A DNA stretch of 64,000 nt from positions 12,400,001 through 12,464,000 of the forward strand of contig CP075493.1 in assembly GCA_021613535.1 (NCBI GenBank), given 5' to 3'. The notes beneath the pieces were generated by a model. That model made no database searches. It was not told the origin of the DNA and worked only from the letters and a program-made list of their open reading frames with translations. Numbering within the stretch: position 1 is the stretch's first letter; each line of letters opens with the position of its first letter. Both the position numbers and the translations under genes were made by a program. This document shows, one piece after another, positions 4,485 through 37,431 of the stretch. The stretch comes from Adineta vaga. Its lineage: Eukaryota; Animalia; Rotifera.

Positions 4485-6873
4485 AGACAAAGCAACTATA
4501 AACTTTCATTTACTGTAACTAAACTTTTTCCACGTACATTTTTTTAATCACTAAATGTATTTTTTAGTCAGCTTGTTCCTCTGTAGTAATCCGTTTTATT
4601 TAAGTAAAGAATGCAAAATTTCCAAACATGCTCTTTACGTACTAACAAGGGAATGTATTCAACTGTCAAATCGCTTCACAAATAAACTTCAGTGGGCCAT
4701 AAGATTATAATTTTTGCTTACGTAAATCAGTTTCTGATGCGCCATACAACGATTCTCTTTATCTTGAAAAGCTTCTGCTGTTGCTATGCCTACTATTTTA
4801 CAGCTCGTATTCTACAAGAAAAGAAAAAGAAGAAAAAGTGTAATAATCTTTTTTTTAATATTTATACTGAATCTATGACGTTTACCATCATTTATTAATT
4901 CCCACACAAGTGGTATTTGAAAACAAACTTGAAGGAAATTCTTGAGGATATGGGTGATAGTAATATCTCATCCTCACACCCTTACCTATACTCCACACCA
5001 ATGTTTTCAAAGATCGTCATTTGTTATATGGACTCAAGATCTGCTCGGCTATTTTACTTTTTCGTCAAATATACAAAGTTAGTTAAGGACGTGTGAATTT
5101 TTGTCACGACCGTATGTCTAAAGTTTAGAACTTAATAAATGTAATTTGTGCTCGCTTAGTCTTCTATCATTGTGTGACAATACAAAATCGTCAAAATATA
5201 ATTTCAGCTTATCTTCTATATTAAAAGTCATGTTGCATTTGTGAAATCCACATGTTGAGTGTGCATGCATAGTTTCAAAGATGTGATGGTAGTTTATTCA
5301 TTTATGGCGCACACACCCTACGAAGTTAACTTGAATATATGATTAAGTTGCTCATATTATATCACCATGAAATTCATTGATTTCAGTTCTCTTATCTACT
5401 ATATAAATGTATGAACGAATTCTGCTATTTTTCGAGTGTAATGTATATGAGCTTTTTATTATGCAATAATCTTGCTGTATCTGTTCATATCATGAAGCTA
5501 TTTTGATTTCAACTCAATACTCGTTTCAACTAAAAATAAAAGACATTTTTCATTTCATTATCTACTATTGTATGTACAGGTAAGAACAGTGTTTGATATC
5601 TTGATTGTAAACTATACAAAACCGTTTTTTTGGTCTTTAATGAAATACGCATTATCTTAACTGTCACTCGTTCATAATTTATATCGTTAGATTCTTTTTC
5701 ATAGGATGATTCATTATTTAACAATTATCTGTTTTCTCAGTATGCAGATCGAAGTATTGTCGGGAGAAGATAATGTTCAACTAGTTCCAGCTGAATGTAT
5801 CTCATCATTATGCTATATACTCAAATATATATCAAGCTCATTGATAGCTGTTATATGTATATGGTACTTATCTCCAGTACTTGTTGTCTTTTTATTCTTT
5901 TGTGTTATGGACTTGTTACTACACTAACACCACCACAAATATCTCAGGAACGTTCAGAATGTAGAAATGAACAAAGAAAAACATGCATCTGTAGGATTTC
6001 GGTCTGTTCACACACGCAAATTTCAAGTATCAGACGTATTCGAATTAATCAAAGTAGAAGACAATGTCATTTGAGTTTATTTGTACAAGCAAATCATTGT
6101 ACAGGGGAAAAATACTAGCAAGTGAAACCGATAAGAACGGTATTTATGTTTTTAGTAATTTTTCTCTTGCAAGATATTCGATCATTATTATAAATATCTT
6201 CAGATGACAGAATATGCGAGTCCGCCTCTATATATGTCTAGAACAATAGACTTGTTCTCATTGTGGTATCTTTATTCTGTTCCGGGTTTGTGTATTTGAC
6301 TTATAAACTCAGCTGTGGTTATAAATCTACAGTAAAAAAGAAATCTGTTAATTTAAACGATATCTTTCAATCAGGACAGTAGTTCATTCGATATTTTCAG
6401 CATGATACATGTCACGCATCTCATTTATGTAGAATCACTTTCGATATGGATTAGAAGACTTTCCCAGGACATGGTATGGATGAGGCTGGAAAACTTCATT
6501 TAACTGGTCACATTACCATCATACCTTCAACGGCGAATTTAATAAAAATATATACAAAATAATAATCATAAAGAAGAAAACTTTGAATATGAATTTCACA
6601 TTAATTTAAAATGGAACAAAGAAAGACATGTATTTGTAGGAAAATGGTTAAGCGAGTTAAACGAATGCTAAGAAGATGGCTTGTATGAATTAATGAAAAT
6701 GCAACACCATCAATGGAATAGACATACAAAAAAAGATAAAAATACAGTTGTTTAGAAATAAATTACTCTATAAATAGTTCTGATATATAGGTAAACATAT
6801 TGAAAAAAAACTTTGAACGAAATCTTCACTCACACCACACAGTATAGTTCGTATTACTTTACGATGATTTATT

Positions 6874-8326
6874 CTACTTGTGATTCTTTTCTAAATCTTC
6901 AACCGGACAAATACCATTTCCTCCAATAAATTTCTTAGATCGAAAACATGATAATTGAGATAATTTCTGAGTAACCATGGATACGTAACAATGTGGATAG
7001 ATAGGAAAGAAACCATAATTATCATCCATAGTTTTTAATGGACCATTCATCGATGAAAACGTTTGAAATAGAGATAAAAATCCAAAGATCAACAATGATA
7101 TTAGCAAATATGTTTCATGATATTTGACAAATATATGTAGATAAGTATCGTACAAAACCCACCAACCACGCCAAACAAATAAACATGATGCAAAAGCTAA
7201 TGCATGAATAAAATTTCGATGAAATTGAGGAAAATTTGATAAAAACATCATCCAAAATTTATTTGTCCAATTGGATTGTTCAAAATAATATTGACAATAC
7301 ATTAGCAGGAAATAAAGTGGATAACCAATCACCAGACAAATCCAAACTGATTTATCCTGTGCATCTGGATATAGATATTGATCAAGAATAACATAAAAAC
7401 CATGCCATACAATAATCGTCATATTAGAAATAATAAGTTCATATAATATGAAATTCATCAAATTCACTTTCCATCGTTTCGTCTTTGAAAACGAAATTCT
7501 TCATCAATATCTATTTTATTTCATACAAGAACAAACTTACCTGTTCTGTTGCAAGTGGACATTCGAATTGAATGCAATATTCAATAGAATCATAGCAAAC
7601 AACAAATGGAGAACAAACTAAATCTGATAAAGTTCCAGTAAGCGCAATCAATGCAAAGGCAGATGCTAATGAGAAAACCAACATAAATCCCCAATCTTGA
7701 GAAGTATATTGATCTAAAATCGTCCACATCATTTCCCATTGAATAATATATAAAAATGCTAAGATGAAGATATGAATTTTCGTCAGAAGAATTCGAATAA
7801 TAGTCCTTTGTTTTTTGAGAAAATTATAAAAGATATCTTGACCAAGATACAAAATGAGAAATAAAATTGCATCGATCACATACGGAACAACTAATGATTC
7901 AGGAGAATAAGTACCATATCCAAGTTCACTATAATCTACTCCATCAAGATTATATGCCAATGCATAACCATTCAATGCATTTAGCATAGTAATAATAAGA
8001 TTCCATCCACAATCCCAAAAGAGAACCAACAATGGAAATAGAAGACAACCAGTAATAATCGGTTCAATTATGAATAGTATCAGATAAGCACCTTTTGGTT
8101 TAATACTCGCTTCATTAGTTTTATTATCAGTTATAGAAATGATGGGCATTAGACGACGTCGATTGGTACTACCATGAGCTGTAGGAAGAGCTTGTGATAG
8201 CTGAGTATCGATAACTTGAACGCACGGTTGATTTATCTCGTCATTATCGAAATGTTTCGAAATAATCGAAAATCGACGTGGAGCATTATTCGAAAGATTC
8301 AGCATAGGAGTTTTGCCATCAATCAT
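6874..8326 (-). CDS. Fuseless-like multi-pass membrane protein, copy 1 (2 exons, intron 7483-7540)
   Basis: Repeated W..W..LD.Y motifs (FWDCGW, WEMMWTILDQY, VWRGWWVLYDTYL); a phase-0 GT-AG intron joins the two ORFs. Confidence 0.75.
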
Positions 8327-8963
8327 TTTAGAAGAAATGATAAATTAAAGTTCTCGGCTAATCGAGTTCATCAACAAAAAAAGGACATGTTTAGATTGTT
8401 AAATAAATATACCAAAAACGGAGAAAGAAAACTTAATGAATCAAGGTTCACTTACAAATATGGGTACTGATAGTTTTGTTTAATATTCTTTGTGCATCAT
8501 CTATTTTTGATTGTATAGAATTGATGGAATGAATCGATTCGATACTAATGTGAAAACTTCGATGGTTTCAATTCGACCAGAATTCGATCCGGATCGGTGT
8601 ACGCAGGAGCAATCAAACTTTTACATCTTCATTTGTGTAGCTTATTGAAGGAAAATGCTTGCCGATTTTATCGTCCTGATTTTTATATTATGTTGATCAG
8701 AGACAAGTAAACATTATATTCATTAAAATTTATCGTTTCTCTCGTGTTTATATTTTGCCGTTGTTTTGATGCTATTTACTTGACAATATAAGAAAAAAGA
8801 AAGTTTTTTTTTATTTATTTATAATAAAAAATAAATGAAGAGAGAGTTTTCTTAGTTACTTGTAATTACCGTTAGTCTCCAGTATGTTAAACATGAATAA
8901 AAAATCAACAAGTGAAGATAAAAGTGACTAGCGAATGTTACTAGTAAACAAGTTTTGGTTGTA

Positions 8964-12633: not shown

Positions 12634-13932
12634 TGTAAACTTGAATACACAGAAGATAAAACGACAATATATGTGAAGTACTAATAGGATATCATTCTAG
12701 CGTATATATATGCGCACCGATTTTCGCATGCGAAAATGTGGCGAAACTGATTTGTTTTTTTCCTATCGAAAGCCGTAAACCGTGAATAGTTGTGCACATT
12801 AAAAAATGTATGGATGTATTGATAAAGGTAAATGTTAATGAAAACATTTTATTTTGACATATGTAGAAAGTTCGCACAGGATTTGCGATAACTCTTTTTA
12901 GTTGTTTATAACATGCCTGAAATTCAATTAATATAGTGTTTGATGTCATTTATCTTCAACTTTTTTTTTAAAGTGTGTGTATTTAGAATTATTGTGAGAA
13001 GGTTTGCCATCTTACTATCATTTCATCAAAGATTAAATACTAGCAACTAAACGCATCACATCATATGTTGCACTTTTGTTCTATTGTCCAAGATTAGATT
13101 ACAAGTTACACTTTTTGATTTCAAATCATTACTCGTTTCAACTAAAAATAAAAGACATTTTTCATTTCATTATCTACTAGTGTATGTACAGGTAAGAATA
13201 GCGTTTGATATCTTGATTGCAAACTATACAAAACCGTTTTTTGGTCTTTAATGAAATACGCATTATCTTAACTGTCACTCGTTCATAATTTATATCGTTA
13301 GATTCTTTTTCATAGGATGATTCATTATTTAACAATTATCTGTTTTCTCAGTATGCCGATCGAAGTACTGTCGGGAGAAGAAAATGTTCAACTAGTTCCA
13401 GCTGAATGTATCTCATCATTATGCTATATACTCAAATATATATCAAGCTCATTGATAGCTGTTATATGTATATGGTACTTATCTCCGGTACTTGTTGTCA
13501 TTTTATTCTTTTGTGTTATGGACTTGTTACTACACTAACACCACCACAAATATCTCAGGAACGTTCAGAATGTAGAAATGAACAAATGGAGGTTGACTTA
13601 ACTATTCCAACATCCTCAAGATGTTGATTCAAGAGAAAAGCAATGAAATGAATTTAAGATCGATTTAAAATGGAACGAAGAAAGACATGTATTTGTAGGA
13701 AAATGGTTAAGCGAGTTAAACGAATGCTAAGAAGATGGCTTGTATGAATTAATGAAAATGCAACACCATCAATGGAATAGACATACAAAAAAAGATAAAA
13801 ATACAGTTGTTTAGAAATAAATTACTCTATAAATAGTTCTGATATATAGGTAAACATATTGAAAAAAAACTTTGAACGAAATCTTCACTCACACCACACA
13901 GTATAGTTCGTATTACTTTACGATGATTTATT

Positions 13933-15385
13933 CTACTTGTGATTCTTTTCTAAATCTTCAACGGGACAAATACCATTTCCTCCAATAAATTTCTTAGATC
14001 GAAAACATGATAATTGAGATAATTTCTGAGTAACCATGGATACGTAACAATGTGGATAGATAGGAAAGAAACCGTAATTATCATCCATAGTTTTTAATGG
14101 ACCATTCATCGATGAAAACGTTTGAAATAGAGATAAAAATCCAAAGATCAACAATGATATTAGCAAATATGTTTCATGATATTTGACAAATATACGTAGA
14201 TAAGTATCGTACAAAACCCACCAACCACGCCAAACAAATAAACATGATGCAAAAGCTAATGCATGAATAAAATTTCGATGAAATTGAGGAAAATTTGATA
14301 AAAACATCATCCAAAATTTATTTGTCCAATTGGATTGTTCAAAATAATATTGACAATACATTAGCAGGAAATAAAGTGGATAACCAATCACCAGACAAAT
14401 CCAAACTGATTTATCCTGTGCATCTGGATATAGATATTGATCTAGAATAACATAAAAACCATGCCATACAATAATCGTCATATTAGAAATAATAAGTTCA
14501 TATAATATGAAATTCATCAAATTCACTTTCCATCGTTTCGTCTTTGAAAACGAAATTCTTCATCAATATCTATTTTATTTCATACAAGAACAAACTTACC
14601 TGTTCTGTTGCAAGTGGACATTCGAATTGAATGCAATATTCAATAGAATCATAGCAAACAACAAATGGAGAACAAACTAAATCTGATAAAGTTCCAGTAA
14701 GCGCAATCAATGCAAAGGCAGATGCTAATGAGAAAACCAACATAAATCCCCAATCTTGAGAAGTATATTGATCTAAAATCGTCCACATCATTTCCCATTG
14801 AATAATATATAAAAATGCTAAGATGAAGATATGAATTTTCGTCAGAAGAATTCGAATAATAGTCCTTTGTTTTTTGAGAAAATTATAAAAGATATCTTGA
14901 CCAAGATATAAAATGAGAAATAAAATTGCATCGATCACATACGGAACAACTAATGATTCAGGAGAATAAGTACCATATCCAAGTTCACTATAATCTACTC
15001 CATCAAGATTATATGCCAATGCATAACCATTCAATGCATTTAGCATAGTAGTAATAAGATTCCATCCACAATCCCAAAAGAGAACCAACAATGGAAATAG
15101 AAGACAACCAGTAATAATCGGTTCAATTATGAATAGTATCAGATAAGAACCTTTTGGTTTAATACTCGCTTCATTAGTTTTATTATCAGTTATAGAAATG
15201 ATGGGCATTAGACGACGTCGATTGGTACTACCATGAGCTGTAGGAAGAGCTTGTGATAGCTGAGTATCGATAACTTGAACGCACAGTTGATTTATCTCGT
15301 CATTATCGAAATGTTTCGAAATAATCGAAAATCGACGTGGAGCATTATTCGAAAGATTCAGCATAGGAGTTTTGCCATCAATCAT
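13933..15385 (-). CDS. Fuseless-like membrane protein, copy 2 (intron 14542-14599)
   Basis: Differs from copy 1 at 4 aa (P/L, A/S, I/T, H/R). Confidence 0.75.
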
Positions 15386-15539
15386 TTTAGAAGAAATGAT
15401 AAATTAAAGTTCTCGGCTAATCGAGTTCATCAACAAAAAAAGGACATGTTTAGATTGTTAAATAAATATACCAAAAAAGGAGAAAGAAAACTTAATAAAT
15501 CAAGGTTCACTTACAAATATGGGTACTGATAGTTTTGTT

Positions 15540-16194
15540 CCCTTTTCTAAAAGAAAGGTTTATAGGCTCTTTAAATAGGGTCGTTAAAATGTTTAAAGTT
15601 TCTTTGTTTGTTTTTTTCCAAGCCAATCAGAAAACAGCGTTCATTAAATTAATCATAACTTATTCCTTTTGGAAATGAATCAAAGGTAGGCCGACGAATG
15701 ACTAGACGTGATTTTAGAGAGTGATAGTTCAGAATATGGATTTGAATGACTTTCACGTGCTTTGCACGTTTGTTCGAAGGCACTTAATTGATCATCTACG
15801 AGAACGAATCCGACAAAGTTCTGTTTCCTGAAAACGAAACCTATACTGGAAACGACACGACCATGTGCGCTGGCGACTAGTAGCGAGTGACTGACGGGGG
15901 AGACGCCAACGAGCGATTAGACGTTTGTTCAAGAGCCTTATAGGAAGGAAAATAAGTATGGGTAACGCTTTTTTGGGAAGTATCAAGCTATCAGATCGTG
16001 AATATTTACAAACAGCACTTATTTTTGCTCTTCTCTTTAAATAAATGATTTAATGATACTTTGAAATGGTGAAAAGATGAAAAACACTTTTAAAAAGGTT
16101 TTATGTATAAAGTTTGCTTGGATCGAGATCTGGTCAAGTCCAGGTCCAGCTTGCGGGTGTTACTAAGCACTGTTATCATTCTTTCAGAAAAGGG
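15540..16194. mobile_element. MITE with CCC termini, present only in duplicate copy 2
   Basis: TIR CCCTTTTCTAAAAGAA / TTCTTTCAGAAAAGGG (15/16); absent from copy 1; no clear TSD. Confidence 0.7.
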
Positions 16195-16596
16195 TCAGCA
16201 AATTCAGAGGATGAGCGTTACTAGTTTAATATTCTCAGTGCATTATCTATTTTTAATTGTATAGAATTGATGGAATGAATCGATTCGATACTAATGTGAA
16301 AACTTCGATGGTTTCAATTCGACCAGAATTCGATCCGGATCGATGTACGCAGGAGCAATCAAACTTTTACATCTTCATTTGTGTAGCTTATTGAAGGAAA
16401 ATGCTTGCCGATTCTATCGTCCTGGTTTTTATATTATGTTAAAAGTCAACTACTGAAGATAGAAGTGACTCTCGATCGTTATTAGTAAAAATGTTTCGTT
16501 GTATAAAATAAAACGATCGTTTTTAACTATATTTTCTTACTGTACTAACTATATTTTTTTTTACATAAATGACTATTTGACACTAGTACTAGTATC

Positions 16597-26407: not shown

Positions 26408-27418
26408 TTATAGATTTGTCTGATGTGTTCGATTTGTTGTTGTTATTATTGGTTCGATACGATGATTTTGACTCCAACAGAATGTAGAACGTAACATGCG
26501 CCATAGTTCTTTTCTGAACATACTTGATGTTAATGTATAAAGATAAAATGAAATTGCAGGAAATACATAACTAAATCCACCAGATATACCAGCTATAAAA
26601 TTTTCTATTGCTATTTGATCAGAACTTTTGTTTTGAATATAAGGAGAAACAATATTATTGGTACTATAAATCATATATGGTAATGTTACAATAACGAATG
26701 CAATTATTTGAGAAAATAACATTTTTAATACTTGTTGGTCACGTTTCAGTTGAATCTGCTTTGTTTGATCAATTCTTGCTGACGGATTAAGAACATCTTG
26801 ACGACGTTTTTGTTTTTCTGCTAAATTTTTCCGAATACCTACAGAAAATATAGTCATTAATGTCAATGGTAGAATAGATGTATTACACAAAGAATAGATG
26901 TTAGCAATAGTAATTCCAATTGTATCAAGAGAATTATAACAATTGTTCGATTTTATATTATAAAAGACCAACATATAAATATGTATAAGTGGGAGAATAA
27001 TAATAATTAAAGCAATAACTGGATATGCAAATTTGACATTTGACATTTGCCTTAAACGTGCATTTGAAGATGATAATGCAAAACGATCAAATGAAGCAGC
27101 ACATAATAAAAAACGAAATATAATAGACATAACATGTATAACATATGCACGACATTTACAAAAAGGAACATTATATGTTATTGGATTAGCATAAAAATAA
27201 CCATAAATTGCTGGAATTGAATACATTAAAAGATTGAATAACATTGCAATTGATGCAAAAAAGAAATATTTACAACATGATGTTGTTCGAAATTGTTTTT
27301 GAGAAAAAAGAAAAATATTAAGAATACATCCAGTCAAACCAAATGTAACAAAGAAACAAGATAAACCGAAAAGTGTAGGTTTTTGTATAAGTGATAATGT
27401 AATACTTAATGAAGACAT
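26408..27418 (-). CDS. Rhodopsin-like 7TM orphan GPCR
   Basis: GCILN, FCKCRAY, ASFDRF and FYLYTLTSSMFRKEL; intronless. Confidence 0.85.
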   Translation of the reverse strand: MSSLSITLSLIQKPTLFGLSCFFVTFGLTGCILNIFLFSQKQFRTTSCCKYFFFASIAMLFNLLMYSIPAIYGYFYANPITYNVPFCKCRAYVIHVMSIIFRFLLCAASFDRFALSSSNARLRQMSNVKFAYPVIALIIIILPLIHIYMLVFYNIKSNNCYNSLDTIGITIANIYSLCNTSILPLTLMTIFSVGIRKNLAEKQKRRQDVLNPSARIDQTKQIQLKRDQQVLKMLFSQIIAFVIVTLPYMIYSTNNIVSPYIQNKSSDQIAIENFIAGISGGFSYVFPAISFYLYTLTSSMFRKELWRMLRSTFCWSQNHRIEPIITTTNRTHQTNL

Positions 27419-29630
27419 TCTATATATGTTGATTTAATGTAGAAAATATGTTTGTTAAGAATCGTTGATTCAAGTAAGATTAGTTTTTTTTCAAATGAAA
27501 AAATGTTTGATGTTCAGAGAAAGTTCTTTGTTAAGAAAAGTAATCAATATAATGTATAGTCCTTGGCAGCTATAGCCTTCAACTAAACATAAGACTGATT
27601 ATCAGATTAACAAATCTACGTAGTTTGTTTTCAATATATGCAGTACGCCATAGTAAAATATGAGAATGTTATTAAAAATTCAATTTTAATCAAGAGTAAA
27701 GAATTAGTACTGTTAGTCATTTTGAAACGAGGTGTTTATTATGAGAAAAGTTATATTGACATAAGATTTTTTTTCTAAAATGAATTTTAACTTGATGAAT
27801 ATATTATATGTAATTTTTATAAATTCAATTTTAAAAGAAGAAGATTGTTGAAATTAAAGATAAGGAGAGAGGAAATTGATTTTCTTCATCGATTTAATTA
27901 TATAAAATGAGTAAATATTAAATTATCATTGCAATACGTGCATTAATGTCCTTTTAAAAATGTCACCGAGTTTCTGTCCTCAAAGAAAAAGGTCTTACAG
28001 GATTTTGTTCTTTGAAAGATGACAACGGATGAAATGTCGTTCATTTTGATATGAGTGCATAAAATAAAAGGGCATCAAGATATTCCTTTGAAATGAAGAA
28101 AAAAGATTTTTTTATCGAACAGTTTCGAGAATAGCTTGAAAAGAAAATGATGAATTTGAAGAAAATATTTTTATTAATGAAAATTTCTACAACGATTCTC
28201 TTCTCAGATTTCATGGAAAAGTGAAGATTTTCAAAATCAATGAGAAACAGAAGTGTGAAGTAAAATTCCGTCCAAGGAGAACCGCTCTATTAGAAAAACA
28301 AAATATACCAAAAGATATGATGGAGAAAAAAAAGAAGTGTAGTTGTGTTAAAAATGATGACACAGATGCAGTCGTAATATTGGAATAGTTATTTAAAAAA
28401 AACATATTTACTATTGTAAATGGATTATAAATAATTCATTGAAGTAAAGTGGAACACTCGTATCTATCTGTATTTCTATACTCACAAAACTAAGATTAAT
28501 AGAAATATCAAGACATGGTTTTGTGTTCTTCTTTGCGTTCAAGAAAGAAGTTAAAAGGTAATAAAGGAAACGAAACTAAGAACATTTATTCGTATTGTTG
28601 AAAAGTTTGGAATATAATAATTAACAATTTATATAACTCAATTATACTTTTTTTTTGTAAGAAAATGAAAGAATATTTATGTAAAACAAATCAATCTTGT
28701 TACATCCAAAGAGTTTTATTAGATTGAAAATTTTTACAATTTATGATTTCCATTAGTATATTAATAAGATTATAATATTAGTTATTGCATTAATTATACT
28801 CATCGATCAGTTATCCAAGTATCTTCCAAGACATTTTCAATTAGATTTCCTGAAAATAACTGTATTTAGGAAAGAACACCATCTTGAAGGTATGTGTGAG
28901 AGCAATATTCACATCCACACCCACACACTGGAAAAAGACGCAAATATCCACAAACCAGGACTCCGCGCGGGATGGAATCATCTCATCTTACCATAGGACA
29001 AGTATTTCTGTAAAAGTTCTCAATTTATCGAAAAAAATCATCGATATTTGTCTAAATTATTCAACAAAAACAATTTGAAAATATGCTTTTCAAAAGACTC
29101 TTTGAGTGATTATGAGGCATAACGATCAGATGATAATCTCGAGCAAAATAAAGATGTTCTAAATCTGAACTAATATAACCCATTCATCCTGCTTAGAAGG
29201 CCACTAGGAGGAAATTTTCAGAAAAAATGTGTGTATTTTGGCGGAAATTTAGCCAAGGTTTGAACCGAATGTGTCGCGACATAATATAAGGTCCAGGGCC
29301 TTTTATTCTTGAGGGAAGTGAGGAAGGGGTATTCATTTATGACTCTAATTTACCCGATTATTTATTTTTTGTATTTATATAAATGTTGATATGTATTCTT
29401 ACGGAAGGTAAAAAATGTGATGAATTTTATTATAATAAAGCTAAGTCCATTTCTTTATGGGCAATATTTTCAGAATAAATTTGATAATTATTACAGCAGC
29501 TTTAAATTTTCTCATTTAATATTTAATATTAAGTTTTAATTAAAAATAATAAATAATTATTTATTTTAATGATAATAATTTATTTAATAAATAATATTAA
29601 TTTGCAAAAGAGAAAAAAAATTGACAAAAT

Positions 29631-29671
29631 TAGTCGACGTTTCGACAGCTAACGCCTCGTTTTCAAGACCA
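29631..29671 (-). ncRNA. Type I hammerhead ribozyme variant (HHR1)
   Basis: UGGUC-UUGAAAA-C-GAGGC GUUA GCUGUC-GAAA-CG-UC^GACUA. Confidence 0.75.
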
Positions 29672-29806
29672 GTTCTTATATGTCACAGTAATTGACCAAT
29701 GAAAAATGATAAACAGAGAAAAGACTATCTTGCTGTATGAATATTCAGAAAAATTCAGATAGATATGCAACCAAGGGTGAAGTCCAAGCTATAAATTCTT
29801 ATAGGG

Positions 29807-32800
29807 TTAGACAACGACCAATGGTGATTGATCCAACGCTGGTTTTATCTTGACCTTAGGTTTATATGTCTGTAGACCTTCAGGAAAAATAATAAGTGGA
29901 ACTGAAGTAGTTGTTCTATTAAGTAATGGTTCGAAATTATTGATTAATAATGATTCTTTTATTAATAAATTATAGTTTTTGTTGTCTCTAGCTATGATCT
30001 TAAAGTTATTCAAATCAATTTTATGATTATTAGTATTTTCATGTTGCTTTACTGCTGAATGTGTTTGTTTGATTGGTTCAGGCTCAGTTATATCAGTTGT
30101 TGATTTATGAAAATATTGTATAGTTTTATTCTTATTTCTATCTGATCGTCTTAATGTTATAGAATTATCAATGACATCACTAGAGACAGTATTAGTTATA
30201 GTTGTTTTATCAAATTCTGCTCCGTGTTCTAGAAATCTTTTTTTAACATGTCTACAAGTTTTACCTATATAACTAGCATCACAATTAGAGCAATTTAATT
30301 TATATACAACATTAGATTTAAGTAAATTAGGTATTTGATCTTTGATTGGGAAATAACGGGCTAGTGTTATCGGTGGTCTTTCAATTGCTTGAAATGAAAT
30401 GTCTGGATCTATATCTTTAGTTATTTTAGATATCTGTTTTTTTAATACATTAGATGGTTCACCTATGAATGGTATATCTAGAATAATTCTTTTTTTCTTT
30501 GCTAAATTAGCTTTATTATTTATGGATTTATCATTAGATGTTTGTGTTTGTATTGAATTACTTTTTTCTATGTATCTAGTAAGTGTTTTTCGTATTTGAG
30601 CTTTTATAAAATTAATCGGATAACCATTTAAACTGCTAATAAATTCAATAAATTCAAATTCTTCATGCATCTGTTTATGTGAAGAACATATCCTTATCGC
30701 TCTGTAAACCATACTACTTATGGTACTGATTTTGTATGAGTGTGGTACGTAAGATTTCCATTTAGTTAATAATCCTGTATATGTTGGTTTTCGGTATATT
30801 GTTGTAGAGAATGAATTAGATATATGGTATGAATTATTATCAGTGGTAATGGTATTTGATGTTTTACTTTCAGATGAACAAATAGATGTATTTGATGTTT
30901 TAATTTCATATGAACAATTAGATGTATTTGACGTTTTAATTTCAGATAAACAGTTTGATGTATTAAATGTATTAATGTTATGGTTATTATTAAATTCAAT
31001 GAATGAATTACTCGATAAATTATTATTTGAGAAAGTGTTAGAATTATTCAATGATTTTGTTTCAATAAGAGTTGTTGATTCATTTTCATTTATGTTTATA
31101 TGATTTGTTGATAAATTAATATCAATTGTATTTGAATCTAGTGAATTATTTGATCGATCAACTATTGTATTTAATGGATTCATACTTAAACTATTCATGG
31201 ATATAATTGATGATTGATTTATATTATAGTTTGATTGAGCTTTATTAAAAATATTATTTTTTATTTGTGTTATATTTAAATGATTAAAAGGCTTATTATT
31301 TAGATTAAAAGTGACTGTCTTATATGATTTGGATTCATGATTGATAGTGTTAAATAACTTAGAATTTGTATTGGTTGAATTAATTCTCTTATCGTTATCT
31401 ACTAATGATTCATTTTCTATTCTATTGTTTATACAAGTTGTTCTATTAGTATTTGTCGGTATGATATCAATTCGATTGTTTGAATCAAATAATGTTGTAT
31501 AATACGAATTATTATTTACACTGATATCTACATGTGTTAATGGTTGATTTATATAAACGTTAGATGTCAAATTATGAACATTAATATCATTTGTATTCGA
31601 TGTATTACAAAAGTTAGTTGTTGTATTGTTACAATTATATGTAAAATTATCTTTTGATTTAGATTCAAGTATAATTACGTTGTCTGGAATATTATTAAGA
31701 TCATTCGAATTCATATCAATATTCTTGTCGAAGTTAGAAATCAATTTCTTATCTGAATCTTTTATTAAATTTGAAAACAGTTTTTTATACTTTTGTTTGA
31801 TAGATGGAATGATATTATTGTTATTAATCAAAATATTTGTTGCATTATTATTAGTTGTGTTTGTTTGATCAATATGTGTAATATTATTATCATTTTCATT
31901 AGATTTAGTATTTACACTCGTTTTTTATTTGTTTTTCATATCAATTAATGATTTAATAAATACATCGATCTTTTGATTATGATCTGTATTTGAAGATATA
32001 GAACTGTTTCTATTAGAATTTGAATTGTTATTTAATTTGTTATTTGTATTAGAATTTTGTCGTTGTTGATTAGTATTGTTGTTATTGTTTTTATTTCTTT
32101 TATTATTATTAGAATAAATAGAAGAAGATCTCGATGATTTATCTTTACGTTCTTTTGTTTCTTTGACTTTTGTTTTGTTGATTGGCTTGTCATTAAATCC
32201 GTTGTTGTTATTAATGGTTATAATATTATTAGGTATTCTAGTGATGTTTATGTCAAGGAATGGCAATGAATTGTTTTTTTCTTCTTCGAAAGTAAAAACT
32301 ATAGAATTATCGAAGCTATTTAATATATCAATTATCTTATCAGCATTAGCATCTTTCTTTATTATAGCATATGTGTCATCAACAAATCTTCTCCAATACA
32401 ACAAACCATTATTTTTCAAACGTGACATTAGTTTATCTTCTAAATAATTGACATATATATCTGCAAATAAAGGTCCAAGTGGAGACCCCATGGCTACACC
32501 ATTGATTTGTGAATAAATTTTATTATTAAAAATAAAATTAGTTTCTTTAGTTGATGTTTCAAGTAGATATTTCATTTCAAATCTATTTTTACATTTATTA
32601 CACCAATCATCGCGTTTCTTATCACTATAGGTACATGTGTGTTGCAATCCATACAATTTATCAAGTATAATTTCAATCGTTCGATCTAGTGGAACATTGG
32701 TAAACAAACTTGTTATATCAAATGACATCATTTTTATTTGAGAATTATCAAATTTCAATGTAAGCAACTCATCAACAAATGTGAAAGTATCTTTAATTAT

Positions 32801-34051
32801 TCTATCATTTCTTCTTAAATAATCAAGTTTAGTAGCTAATAACTTTGCCAACTTATAATTGAATGTTCCTGTAGCTGATACAATCGGTCTAAGAGGTGCT
32901 CCTTGTTTATGAATTTTAGGTAAACCATAAATTCTAGCTGGTTGAGAGCCTCTAGGCCGACAAAAGTAATATTCCTTTTCACTTATAAAACCTTCATTTT
33001 TCAACTGTATTAATTTACGTATCAATCTCTCTTCTTGTATTATAGTTTCATCACATTCAATGATTTTAAATGTATTACAATCTTTTAATAAATCAAGCAT
33101 CTTATTATTATATTCTTCTCTATCAATTAGTACAATTCCTTTGCCTTTATCTGGCTTTGTGATTAATATTGATTTGTCCTTAGAAAGATTTTTCAAAATG
33201 TTTTTAAATTGAATAGTTTCATGTTTATGTATATTTATTATCTTATTAGCATTCTTACGAAAATGATTACAAACTGATCTGATTTTACTAGCATATTGCA
33301 ATTGAATTGGTGTTAGATTATATTTTATTTCTTCATCCGCATCTTTTTCTTCATAATCCTTTTTATCAGTACAATGACCTAATACTTCAACGAAAAAAGT
33401 TTCAATATTACTTATGAATGACATTTCATCAAATTTGTTATCTGGTAAAACAAAATTTAAACCATTTTCTAATATATTTATTTCTTTATCTGTTAAAATT
33501 CTCTTTGATAAATTAGTTATTGGCGATAAAATAGATTTAACTGATTGTGTTTTTGGATTTTGTTTGTTACGTAAATTATTTAATTTTCTTACATGAGTTT
33601 TCCTGATTTTTGTTTCTTTTAATAGTACCAACTTATTAATAATTCTCTCTAATCTACATACATATAAATGATTCAGGTCAAGATTTAACAACGTCTTACA
33701 ATTTCTGTCTATACGATACAAACGAGATAACTCACTTTTCTTGTGTTTTAATTCGTTGAGCAAGATCTGTTCGTAACAATCATTAATAGCCCGTCGATGA
33801 TGTTGATGCGTCGATGGGATCTTAAATTGAACGAATTTTGGAATTAATTTTTCTCGTTTACATGTTCGTAAAAAATCCAAGTCCAGTTTAATCTTTGACA
33901 TCTTGAGCTGGTGCTTGCCATAGAAAAATACATTTTTTCCAATCACAGACCCATATTGCTGCCCTATTATTTGAATATAATTCCATTTCTTTATGGGCAA
34001 TATTTTGAGAATAAACTTAATCATTATTACAGCAGCTTTAAATTTTTTCAT
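29807..34051 (-). pseudogene. Penelope RT-GIY-YIG polyprotein (~1414 codons) with Asn-rich insert and one in-frame TAA at 31925-31927
   Basis: YGLPKIHK, FDITSLFTNV, GVAMGSPL, FVDD, LPFLD...IYRKPT, VVY..C..C..YIGKT; the two ORFs share a frame. Confidence 0.9.
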
Positions 34052-34164
34052 TTGATATTTAATTTTAAATTTTAATTAAAATTAATAAATAATTATTTAT
34101 TTCAATGATTATGATTTATTGAATAAATAATATTAATTTACAAAAGAAAAAAAATTGACAATAT

Positions 34165-34205
34165 TCGTCGACGTTTCGAGGATTAACACCTCATTTTCAA
34201 GACCA
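34165..34205 (-). ncRNA. Type I hammerhead ribozyme variant (HHR2)
   Basis: UGGUC-UUGAAAA-U-GAGG UGUUAAU CCUC-GAAA-CG-UC^GACGA. Confidence 0.75.
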
Positions 34206-34495
34206 GATGTTAAATGATTCATAAAGAAAGCAAGAGAAAGGACCAAAGAAAGAAAACAAAACAGCTGTTCTATATGCCAATCAGAATCTTTATAAACAAC
34301 CTTACAAGGCTTTAATTTATATTACCATGATAAGTTTAACTTCATTCGTTTAAGAGCTATTTATCGATTTTTTTATTCGAACCAGAAAAAATGAGTATTT
34401 TACCATTCTATCTTATGTCTTCATTTATCAATCATTCAAATTATTTCACATCAACACGATTATACTATACTAACAAAAGATCATCTTCTTATAAG

Positions 34496-37431
34496 GTCAA
34501 AGAAACAAAAGAACGTAAAGATAAATCATCGAAATCTTCTTCTATTTATTCTAATAATAATAATAAAAGAAATAAAAACAATAACAACAATAATATTGAA
34601 CAACGACAAAAGTCTAATAGAAATAGTTCTTCATCTTCAAATACAGATCATAATCAAAAGATCGATGCATTTATTAAATCATTAATTGAAACTAAAAACA
34701 AAACAATAACGAGTGTAAATAATAAATCTAATAATACACATATTGATCAAACAAATATAGTCAATAATAATGCAATAGATATCTCGACTAATAACGTTAA
34801 CACCAATCCATCTATCAGACAGAATAATAGAAAATTGTTTTCAAAGTTAATAAAAGATTCAGATAAGAAATTGATTTCTAATTTTGACAAGATGATTGAT
34901 ATTAATTCGAATGATCTCAACATTATTCCAGACAACGAAATTTTACGTGAATCTAAATCAAAAGATAATTGTACATATAATTGCAACTATACAACAACTA
35001 ACTCTTGTAACACATCGAATAGAAAGGACATTATTAGTCAAAATTCGACATCCAACGTGTATATAAATCAACCAACAACACATACAGATATCATTGAGAA
35101 TGATAGCTCAAATAATACAACATTAATTGATTCAAATAATCGAATTGATATCATACCAACAAATACTAATAGAATAACTAATCTAAAGAATAAAATAAAA
35201 AATAATTCAATAATAGATATTGATAAAAGTATTAATTTATCTCCAAATTCAAACGTTGATAATAATACCAATATGAATTCAATAGATCATAACATATGTT
35301 CAAATAATAGAATTTTGCATCAATCTAAATCAAATGTTATATACAGATATAATTCGAACAATAGAACTAATTTTTGTAATACATCAAATACAAGTGACAT
35401 GAATGTTCATAATTTGATCTCCATTGTATATATAAATCAACCAACAACACATGCAGATGTCATTGAGAATAACAGTTCAAATAATACAGCATTAAGTGAT
35501 CCAAATAATCAAATTGATATCATACCAACAAATATTAATATAACAAGTAATCTAAACAATAGATTAGAAAATGAATCATTATTAGATAATGATAAGAGAA
35601 TTAACTCAACCAATACAAATTCAAAGCTAGATAACACTATCAAACATAAGTTGAAATCATATAAGACAGTTACTTTTAATCTAAATAATATTCCATTGAA
35701 TAATTCAAATATAACACATATAAATAATGTTATTTTAAATAAAATTCAATCAAACTATAATATAAATCAATCTTCAATGGTATACATGAATAGTTTAAAT
35801 AATAATCCATTAAATACAACAGTTGATCGATCAAATAATTCATTAGATTTAAATACAATCAATACTAATTTATTAACACATTACATAAACTTAAATGAAA
35901 ATGAATCAACAACTCTTATTGAAACAAAATCATTGAATAATTCTAACACTTTCTCAAATAATAATCAATCGAGTAATTCACCTATTGAATTTAATAATAA
36001 CCATAACATTAATACATCTAATACACCTAACTGTTCATCTGAAATTAAAAGATCAAATACCATTACCACTGATAATAATTCATACCATATATCTAATTCA
36101 TTTTCTACAACAATATACCGAAAACCAACATATACAGGATTATTAACTAAATGGAAATCTTACGTACCACACTCATATAAAATTAGTACTATCAGTTGTA
36201 TGATTTACAGAGCGATAAGAATATGTTCTTCATATAAACAGATGCATGAAGAATTTAAATTTATTGAATTTATCAGCAGTCTAAATGGTTATCCTATTAA
36301 TTTTGTAAAAGCTCAAATACGAAAAACACTTACTAGATACATAGAAAAAAGTAATTCAATACAAACACAAACATCTAATGATAAATCTATAAATAATAAA
36401 GATAATTTAGCAAAGAAAAAAAGAATTATTTTAGACATACCATTTATAGGTGAACCATCTAATGTATTAAAAAAGCAGATATCTAAAATAACAAAAGTTA
36501 TAGATCCAGACATTTCATTTCAGGCAATTGAAAGACCACCGATAACACTAGCCCGTTATTTCCCAATCAAAGATCAAATACCTAATTTACTTAAATCTAA
36601 TGTTGTATATAAATTAAATTGCTCTAATTGTGATGCTAGTTATATAGGTAAAACTTGTAGACATGTTAAGAAAAGATTTTTAGAACATGGAGCAGAATTT
36701 GATAAAACAACTATAACTAATACTGTCTCTAGTGATGTAACTGTTAATTCTATTACATTAAGACGATCAGATAGAAATAAGAATAAAACTATACAATATT
36801 TTCATAAATCAACAACTGATATAACTATTCCTGAACCAATCAAACAAACACATTCAGCAGTAAAGCAACATGAAAATACTAATAATCATAAAATTGATTT
36901 GAATAACTTTAAGATCATAGCTAGAGACAACAAAAACTATAATTTATTAATAAAAGAATCATTATTAATCAATAATTTCGAACCATTACTTAATAGAACA
37001 ACTACTTCAGTTCCACTTATTATTTTTCCTGAAGGTCTACAGACATATAAACCTAAGGTCAAGATAAAACCAGCGTTGGATCAATCACCATTGGTCGTTG
37101 TCTAACCCTATAAAAATTTATAGCTTGGACTTCACCCTTGGTTGCATATCTATCTGAATTTTTCTGAATATTCATACAGCAAGATAGTCTTTTCTCGTTT
37201 TTTATCATTTTTCATTGGTCAATTAATGTGACATATAGAACTTGTCTTGAAAATGAGGCGTTAGCTGTCGAAACGTCGACGAATATTGTCAATTTTTTTT
37301 CTTTTGTAAATTAATATTATTTATTCAATAAATCATAATCATTGAAATAAATAATTATTTATTAATTTTAATTAAAATTTAAAATTAAATATCAAATGAA
37401 AAAATTTAAAGCTGCTGTAATAATGATTAAG
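34496..37431 (+). mobile_element. 5'-truncated inverted Penelope copy (Asn-rich insert, thumb, GIY-YIG, 3' pLTR)
   Basis: Inverted homologue of 29446-32167; open frame to 37105; ends with the ORF start MKKFKAAVIMIK. Confidence 0.92.
37242..37282 (+). ncRNA. Type I hammerhead ribozyme variant (HHR3)
   Basis: UUGUC-UUGAAAA-U-GAGGC GUUA GCUGUC-GAAA-CG-UC^GACGA; predicted cleavage after 37277. Confidence 0.75.

Follow-up and report, generated by a model that had tools for sequence, protein, structure and literature searches.

The 64,000-nucleotide stretch of Adineta vaga DNA analysed here (contig CP075493.1, positions 12,400,001 to 12,464,000; hereafter the window) contains a Penelope-like element (PLE), Penelope3_Av (Pen3_Av), with three motifs of the type I hammerhead ribozyme (HHR1 to HHR3). 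Arm A lies between a 5' pseudo-long terminal repeat (pLTR) with HHR2 and a tailed 3' pLTR with HHR1, and arm B stands head-to-head with it and ends in an untailed pLTR with HHR3 (Table 1). The open reading frame (ORF) specifies, in order, an N-terminus, a reverse transcriptase (RT) core (PF00078), an insert with about 26% Asn, the thumb and a GIY-YIG-like endonuclease (EN). The PF00078 match was above the cut-off; the GIY-YIG match was weak (E=0.021, below the Pfam cut-off), and a YIGKT motif is found there. Arm B comprises the Asn-rich insert, thumb, EN, 3' untranslated region (UTR) and a pLTR lacking the tail. A single ORF with RT and C-terminal GIY-YIG, pLTRs, a tail at one end and an inverted 5'-truncated copy place the element among the EN+ Penelope/Poseidon PLEs.

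By sequence and coordinates, the window element is the published Penelope3_Av copy of A. vaga scaffold_607 (Arkhipova, Yushenova and Rodriguez 2013, PMC3846280), since the published coordinates plus 258 give the ORF at 29807-34051 and the start of the inverted piece at 34497. An 18-mer containing the stop codon, as well as both ORF ends, was found in the published alignment, and that study likewise describes the Asn-rich insert between RT core and thumb. It predates the hammerhead finding and lists no more than the first 292 bp of the inverted arm, which is followed here complete to its pLTR.

Table 1. Features of the Pen3_Av locus, numbered from the first nucleotide of the window
Feature	Position	Strand	Remarks
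3' pLTR and ~35-nt tail of arm A	29442-29671	-	older subfamily; 90% identity with the other two pLTRs in the downstream part
HHR1, B-type, in 3' pLTR of full-length arm A	29622-29685	-	U3-A8 core 29666-29660; bulged stem II; predicted cut 29636/29635; UGACA/UGUCA extension
Pen3_Av ORF	29807-34051	-	1414 codons; one in-frame TAA at codon 709 (31927-31925); published scaffold_607 copy
5' pLTR	34016-34205	-	starts at HHR2 stem I 5' strand; ATG 118 nt past cut site
HHR2, A-type	34165-34205	-	U3-A8 core 34200-34194; 4-bp stem II; stem I G-G mismatch; predicted cut 34170/34169
A-type leader upstream of HHR2	34206-34496	-	TGATTG(G) and TGAATCATT motifs kept in 8 loci
Arm B, inverted 5'-truncated copy	34497-37431	+	~99% identical to intact sibling at C1:14.66 Mb
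Seven GT-AG introns (50-69 nt), antisense to ORF	34953-36989	-	from putative RNA contigs, variants mostly sibling-matching; exon-by-exon non-coding
HHR3, B-type	37228-37291	+	U3-A8 core 37247-37253; bulged stem II; predicted cut 37277/37278; span takes in UGACA/UGUCA extension

The three motifs have position U3 of the core at 29666 (minus strand), 34200 (minus) and 37247 (plus), where an initial annotation of this DNA had put them; the window gave three matches to the descriptor, 300 dinucleotide shuffles none. In each, stem I leads into UUGAAAA and a single extra pyrimidine, after which come a 15-nt stem II, GAAA-CG-UC and the strand that pairs with stem I. Read on the minus strand, HHR1 consists of UGGUC (29671-29667), UUGAAAA (29666-29660), an extra C, stem II (29658-29644), GAAA-CG-UC (29643-29636) and GACUA (29635-29631); the partner strand of HHR3, GACGA, occupies 37278-37282. 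With UUGAAAA, GAAA and GUC in all three, the motifs conform to the hammerhead core at positions 3-9 (YUGANRA with a 3-8 pair), to its GAAA and to its UH triplet. Stem I is open and short, with 5 bp in HHR1 and HHR3 and 3 bp plus a G-G mismatch in HHR2. Stem II shows G10.1-C11.1 with covariation and the extra nucleotide that separates position 9 from 10.1, and stem III is reduced to the palindrome ACGU throughout. Homology between the pLTRs begins at the stem I 5' strand, which places the ribozymes within the pLTRs, at their 5' edge.

Several details of the initial annotation had to be adjusted. It had assigned a ribozyme to each terminus, which is true of HHR1 and HHR3 at the outer ends, whereas HHR2 is internal and belongs to the 5' pLTR, in the middle of the head-to-head arrangement. 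The covariation it saw in stem I holds as a change from G-U to U-G between HHR1 and HHR3, but HHR2 (UGGUC/GACGA) has three contiguous pairs and a mismatch. Stem II, said to differ and still pair, does so directly in HHR2, but in HHR1 and HHR3 only with a bulged G that divides the helix into 2 bp and 3 bp. The UGACA/UGUCA extension of stem I exists in the latter two, but no covariation supports it, and a related metagenome copy has lost it.

Comparison across copies carries the assignment. An anchored pattern gave 10 matches in the 100.8-Mb genome and none in the reversed control, and a relaxed pattern with positions 3 and 8 left free gave 72 matches compared to 12 in controls. That pattern admitted all four of the combinations seen, and its 45 well-formed motifs give the unbiased counts: the 3-8 pair was C-G in 28, U-A in 15, C-A in one and U-G in one. 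The compensated change from C3-G8 to U3-A8 proposed at the outset is thus borne out by 43 of the 45, and the register of the core agrees with it, as position 7 varies between A and U while positions 3 and 8 stay U and A. Loop III was palindromic in all 45 (CG in 28, GC in 17; ACGU or AGCU), compared with 19 of the remaining 27 matches; the comparison across copies favours the proposed reading of ACGU as a stem III that would form in dimers. In an ungapped alignment of 21 hand-picked rows of related sequences, 83.5% of the stem cells paired, against 66.3% after shuffling and 27-55% in slid controls. A metagenome scan added 28 further U3-A8 motifs, many of them adjoining a Penelope RT or EN, and under a pattern that left stem II unconstrained, stem II paired over at least 3 bp in 12 of 13 distinct metagenome relatives, where 2.4 were expected. 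Covariation across family copies, which the initial annotation had named beside cleavage as a test of its reading, is present among both genome and metagenome copies. The Pen3 branch is characterised by U3-A8 together with ACGU, the other RT-bearing Penelope families examined by C3-G8 together with AGCU, so the swap probably reflects one or two evolutionary events.

As had been predicted, stock searches miss these ribozymes: the Rfam covariance models gave no hammerhead match at E<=10. Together with the shortness of the motif, this could point to a chance look-alike in AT-rich repeat ends, but such an origin is highly improbable and, in our judgement, refuted by the shuffles, the genome control and the covariation; the fixed place at the 5' edge of the pLTR also speaks against it. 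At the level of sequence, the structural assignment as hammerheads is solid.

In a related copy of the Pen3 branch (L026:7172-7215), the hammerhead is probably dead, with G5 changed to C (UUCAUAA), stem I disrupted and a B-like stem II. Inverted pairs of C3-G8 hammerheads 150-300 nt apart form mini pLTR-only elements elsewhere in the genome (L033, L044, L057, L064 and L066). One metagenome relative (L081:2-1984) is in true tandem, with EN, a U3-A8 hammerhead and the next ORF start in succession, and lacks the A-type leader.

The 5' and 3' ribozymes of Pen3 are of two kinds, HHR-A and HHR-B, each of which keeps its own upstream sequence and stem II while the repeats downstream are homogenised. 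The leader of HHR-A is conserved in eight loci of diverged subfamilies, and its distal part (about 34340-34496) is what remains of RT motifs D-E, inverted and decayed; HHR-B follows the 3' UTR. Upstream of the ribozyme, identity between A and B is at background (about 62%), whereas downstream it is 99-100% within each locus or young lineage, and the 5' and 3' pLTRs of the sibling are 100% identical downstream of the HHR. Nine Pen3 termini show a four-gamete pattern, with 16 of 16 A/B-diagnostic columns at -71 to -11 and six of six columns separating young from old at +3 to +162. Since the former all lie 5' of -10 and the latter all 3' of +2, the exchange in Pen3 maps within 13 nt around the scissile bond. 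In three other lineages, the switch sits at the 5' edge of the HHR: at L014, L019 and L025, the last of them a locus of the C3-G8 family, the shared sequence takes in the core and stem II and extends as far as the 5' strand of stem I, which rules out a crossover universally at the cut site. Judged by these alignments, the 5' (A) and 3' (B) HHRs are two old lineages whose downstream sequence was swapped at or near the ribozyme, and the HHR is always the boundary of homology, the cut site not always. The A/B dimorphism and the downstream switch are the new-looking part of this case.

These data bear on the template for transposition. At L014 and L019, insertions with 12-bp target site duplications (TSDs), the tailed end continues through HHR-A into the leader, so that the template must have been intact or bridged at the HHR-A site. 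The inherited leader upstream of HHR-A speaks for templates of transposition that often stay uncut at the 5' HHR. A purely rolling-circle origin of both pLTRs was rejected, since a leader of its own, rather than the 3' UTR, precedes the 5' HHR; the intact or bridged template at L014 and L019 likewise excludes simple cutting and circularisation as the origin of both.

The position of the switch raises the question of whether the HHR junction is a programmed strand-exchange point. Once both HHRs had cleaved, RT (or a circle formed by ligation) would move from the 5' pLTR to the 3' UTR exactly at the scissile bond; every 3' pLTR would be renewed with 5' pLTR sequence, and the A and B stem IIs would stay separate. 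Such a scheme fits the 13-nt crossover interval, which contains the cut, the step in the sibling from background identity upstream to complete identity downstream, and the bulged B-type stem II, which is kept in one metagenome relative; we nevertheless regard it as possible rather than probable. A single exchange event suffices for the Pen3 pattern, the junction is displaced from the cut at L014, L019 and L025, and the leader has been inherited across the HHR-A site. A specific form of it is equally tentative: Pen3 may have two specialised HHRs, A with the ancient leader and B with the bulged stem II, whose A x B dimer would be the junction where RT or ligation switches strands and where, at the scissile bond, the 3' pLTR is renewed with 5' pLTR sequence. 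If true, PLE hammerheads would have in this junction a defined part in the formation of pLTRs.

The interpretation that we consider likely is that these are genuine minimal type I hammerheads of the known PLE class in the pLTRs of Penelope3_Av, of ordinary chemistry, weak, dependent on dimers and probably on protein, which trim read-through RNA, while the RNA used for insertion is unprocessed and is primed from the two nicks in the target, just within the ORF start. This interpretation is not mutually exclusive with a switch at the junction, with a structural role or with a chance origin. U3-A8 retains the Watson-Crick pair between positions 3 and 8 and the 2'-OH of position 8, and for this reason the ordinary hammerhead cleavage after GUC established for the family is expected here. 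Stem III cannot close in a monomer; in a dimer, the ACGU of the two copies would pair, stem I would form in trans, and each core would cut the site of the other copy. Competing hairpins and a GUCGAC palindrome over the cut site would keep the activity of naked RNA low, and by analogy with an Anolis PLE, the element's own protein probably chaperones the fold. The most likely role would be conditional processing of read-through transcripts, in which a cut at HHR-A removes the inverted leader and a cut at HHR-B yields unit-length RNA. For insertion itself, the RNA would be uncleaved or bridged at HHR-A. Tailed and untailed ends, together with the Anolis data, suggest that both target nicks prime cDNA just inside the ORF start, and the two cDNAs would meet in the inverted segment, giving the head-to-head layout.

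A number of observations weigh against this interpretation. In a nearest-neighbour model, which leaves tertiary contacts out, the hammerhead fold of the monomers was predicted at -6.9 to -8.9 kcal/mol and the minimum free energy fold at -12.4 to -14.4 kcal/mol; for dimers, again outside any tertiary contacts, active folds reached -15.5 to -19.5 kcal/mol and inactive ones -31.6 to -36.0 kcal/mol. Inactive alternatives, either a hairpin or the intermolecular GUCGAC palindrome over the cut site, are thus preferred by 4-6 kcal/mol in monomers and 14-17 in dimers. The counts of U3-A8 motifs likely represent just the one or two events mentioned above. The window copy has a stop codon in its ORF and lacks a TSD. 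The putative RNA evidence consists of contigs, which show no transcript ends, and the detectable transcripts over HHR3 are antisense, the strand on which no hammerhead forms.

The predicted stability of the inactive folds also favours a structural or cis-acting role, with the motifs serving as an RT pause, a protein-binding site or homology for template switching, or being homogenised by gene conversion; cleavage in vivo would then be negligible and the crossover would mark where homology ends. The weak stem I of HHR2 is in line with such a role, as are the dispensability of HHR catalysis for insertion in vitro and the lack of cleaved ends in Anolis RNA-seq (PMC11167929), the proliferation of Naiad PLEs without HHRs (PMC8557442) and a 4-nt mismatch block at -14 to -11 that could halt conversion tracts. 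We consider this role unlikely, because the catalytic nucleotides are all invariant and compensation of the 3-8 pair recurs in different families and samples, neither of which a purely structural role would need.

Transcripts over arm B were assessed from putative RNA contigs (four runs from three studies, not recorded as RNA). Seven CT..AC joints in these contigs correspond to GT-AG introns antisense to the ORF and make up a non-coding spliced transcript at 34680-37362 on the minus strand. One contig crosses the HHR3 site; the leader was covered by no putative RNA contig. An antisense protein was rejected exon by exon, as seven of the eight exons are stopped in all three frames. The introns look cryptic because they are retained in the genomic copies checked and several of their sites are not conserved in the older arm A. 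The transcript is possibly a small-RNA precursor. It bears on the antisense-template model of PMC3846280, a paper in which spliced antisense RNA is not described. A high-depth contig of run X1 folds back inside the pLTR (window 37355 / 34092) with a 38-nt hairpin between the arms; it may be an artefact or derive from another element.

The sibling at C1:14.65-14.66 Mb shares this layout, its 1499-aa ORF is intact and it has a 13-bp TSD, whereas a search for a TSD at the window locus found none. The window copy is a mosaic in which the leader, the 5' part of RT and arm B are about 99% sibling-like and the 3' part of arm A differs by about 3-14% plus indels; arm B was on these grounds rejected as a fold-back copy of its own arm A. 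Recombination may also have occurred later at the window locus. The Asn-rich insert grows by internal duplication (34899-35643, 30852-30959): arm B and the sibling have a tandem of about 370 nt that arm A lacks, and arm A has three repeats of 36 nt. Arm B of the sibling carries a 5.9-kb DNA transposon (L011:5186 to L012:2069; C1:14.653-14.659 Mb) with CCC...GGG ends, an apparent 2-bp TSD and a Transposase_21 match (CACTA/CMC-like); its insertion point is where the 2013 annotation of the inverted piece ends. Elsewhere in the window, 5501-8694 and 13113-16440 are a direct duplication, 97-99% identical at an offset of about 7 kb (6575-8480 versus 13634-15539 plus flanks). An intronless 7tm_1 receptor ORF (26408-27418, minus strand) lies upstream of the Penelope element, and ankyrin-like coding stretches begin at about 39700.

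Cervera and de la Pena (2014, PMC4209133) describe minimal HHRs in PLE pLTRs with low, dimer-only cleavage and a nucleotide separating 9 from 10.1; they report a U3-A8 core in Schistosoma Cercyon PLEs (about 1,300 matches), a helix II with a bulge in D. virilis and, for rotifer PLEs, a helix III that is small and palindromic. Pen3 has in common with these metazoan ribozymes the pLTR location, short helix I, extra nucleotide, G10.1-C11.1, palindromic 15.2-16.2 and small palindromic helix III. Natural U3-A8 cores, with prior in vitro activity stated, were reported by Perreault et al. (2011, PMC3088659) and show the same covariation, a likeness of the core alone; a review (PMC6765202) also cites dimer cleavage by PLE hammerheads. 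The novelty implied by the initial annotation therefore does not hold, as U3-A8, the extra nucleotide, palindromic helix III, bulged helix II and the need for dimers are all published. The main text of PMC4209133 does not name the U3-A8 core of rotifer Pen3, which may be listed in its supplementary figures, nor does it describe two persistent 5' and 3' alleles in one element. The hammerhead of the Anolis PLE, PAc Poseidon, needs the element's protein for cleavage, and the main template there is RNA that has not been processed (PMC11167929). Like Pen3, this PLE has its HHR close to the ORF start, tailed ends that coincide with internal RT starts, and extension of both target strands; unlike Pen3, it has a C3-G8 core, is cut within the ORF rather than 118 nt before the ATG, and is arranged in tandem rather than head-to-head.

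The window HHRs are well-supported members of a described ribozyme class in a published element, and their structure had been read correctly but is not new. The variant itself matters little, each of its features having been published, though Rfam and strict CUGANGA descriptors miss the Pen3 HHRs. The locus is of value for testing the function of PLE hammerheads, with A and B stem II alleles that are naturally marked and a sibling with an intact ORF, so that the position of the crossover, the choice of dimer partner and the use of cleaved versus uncleaved template would be readable from the products.

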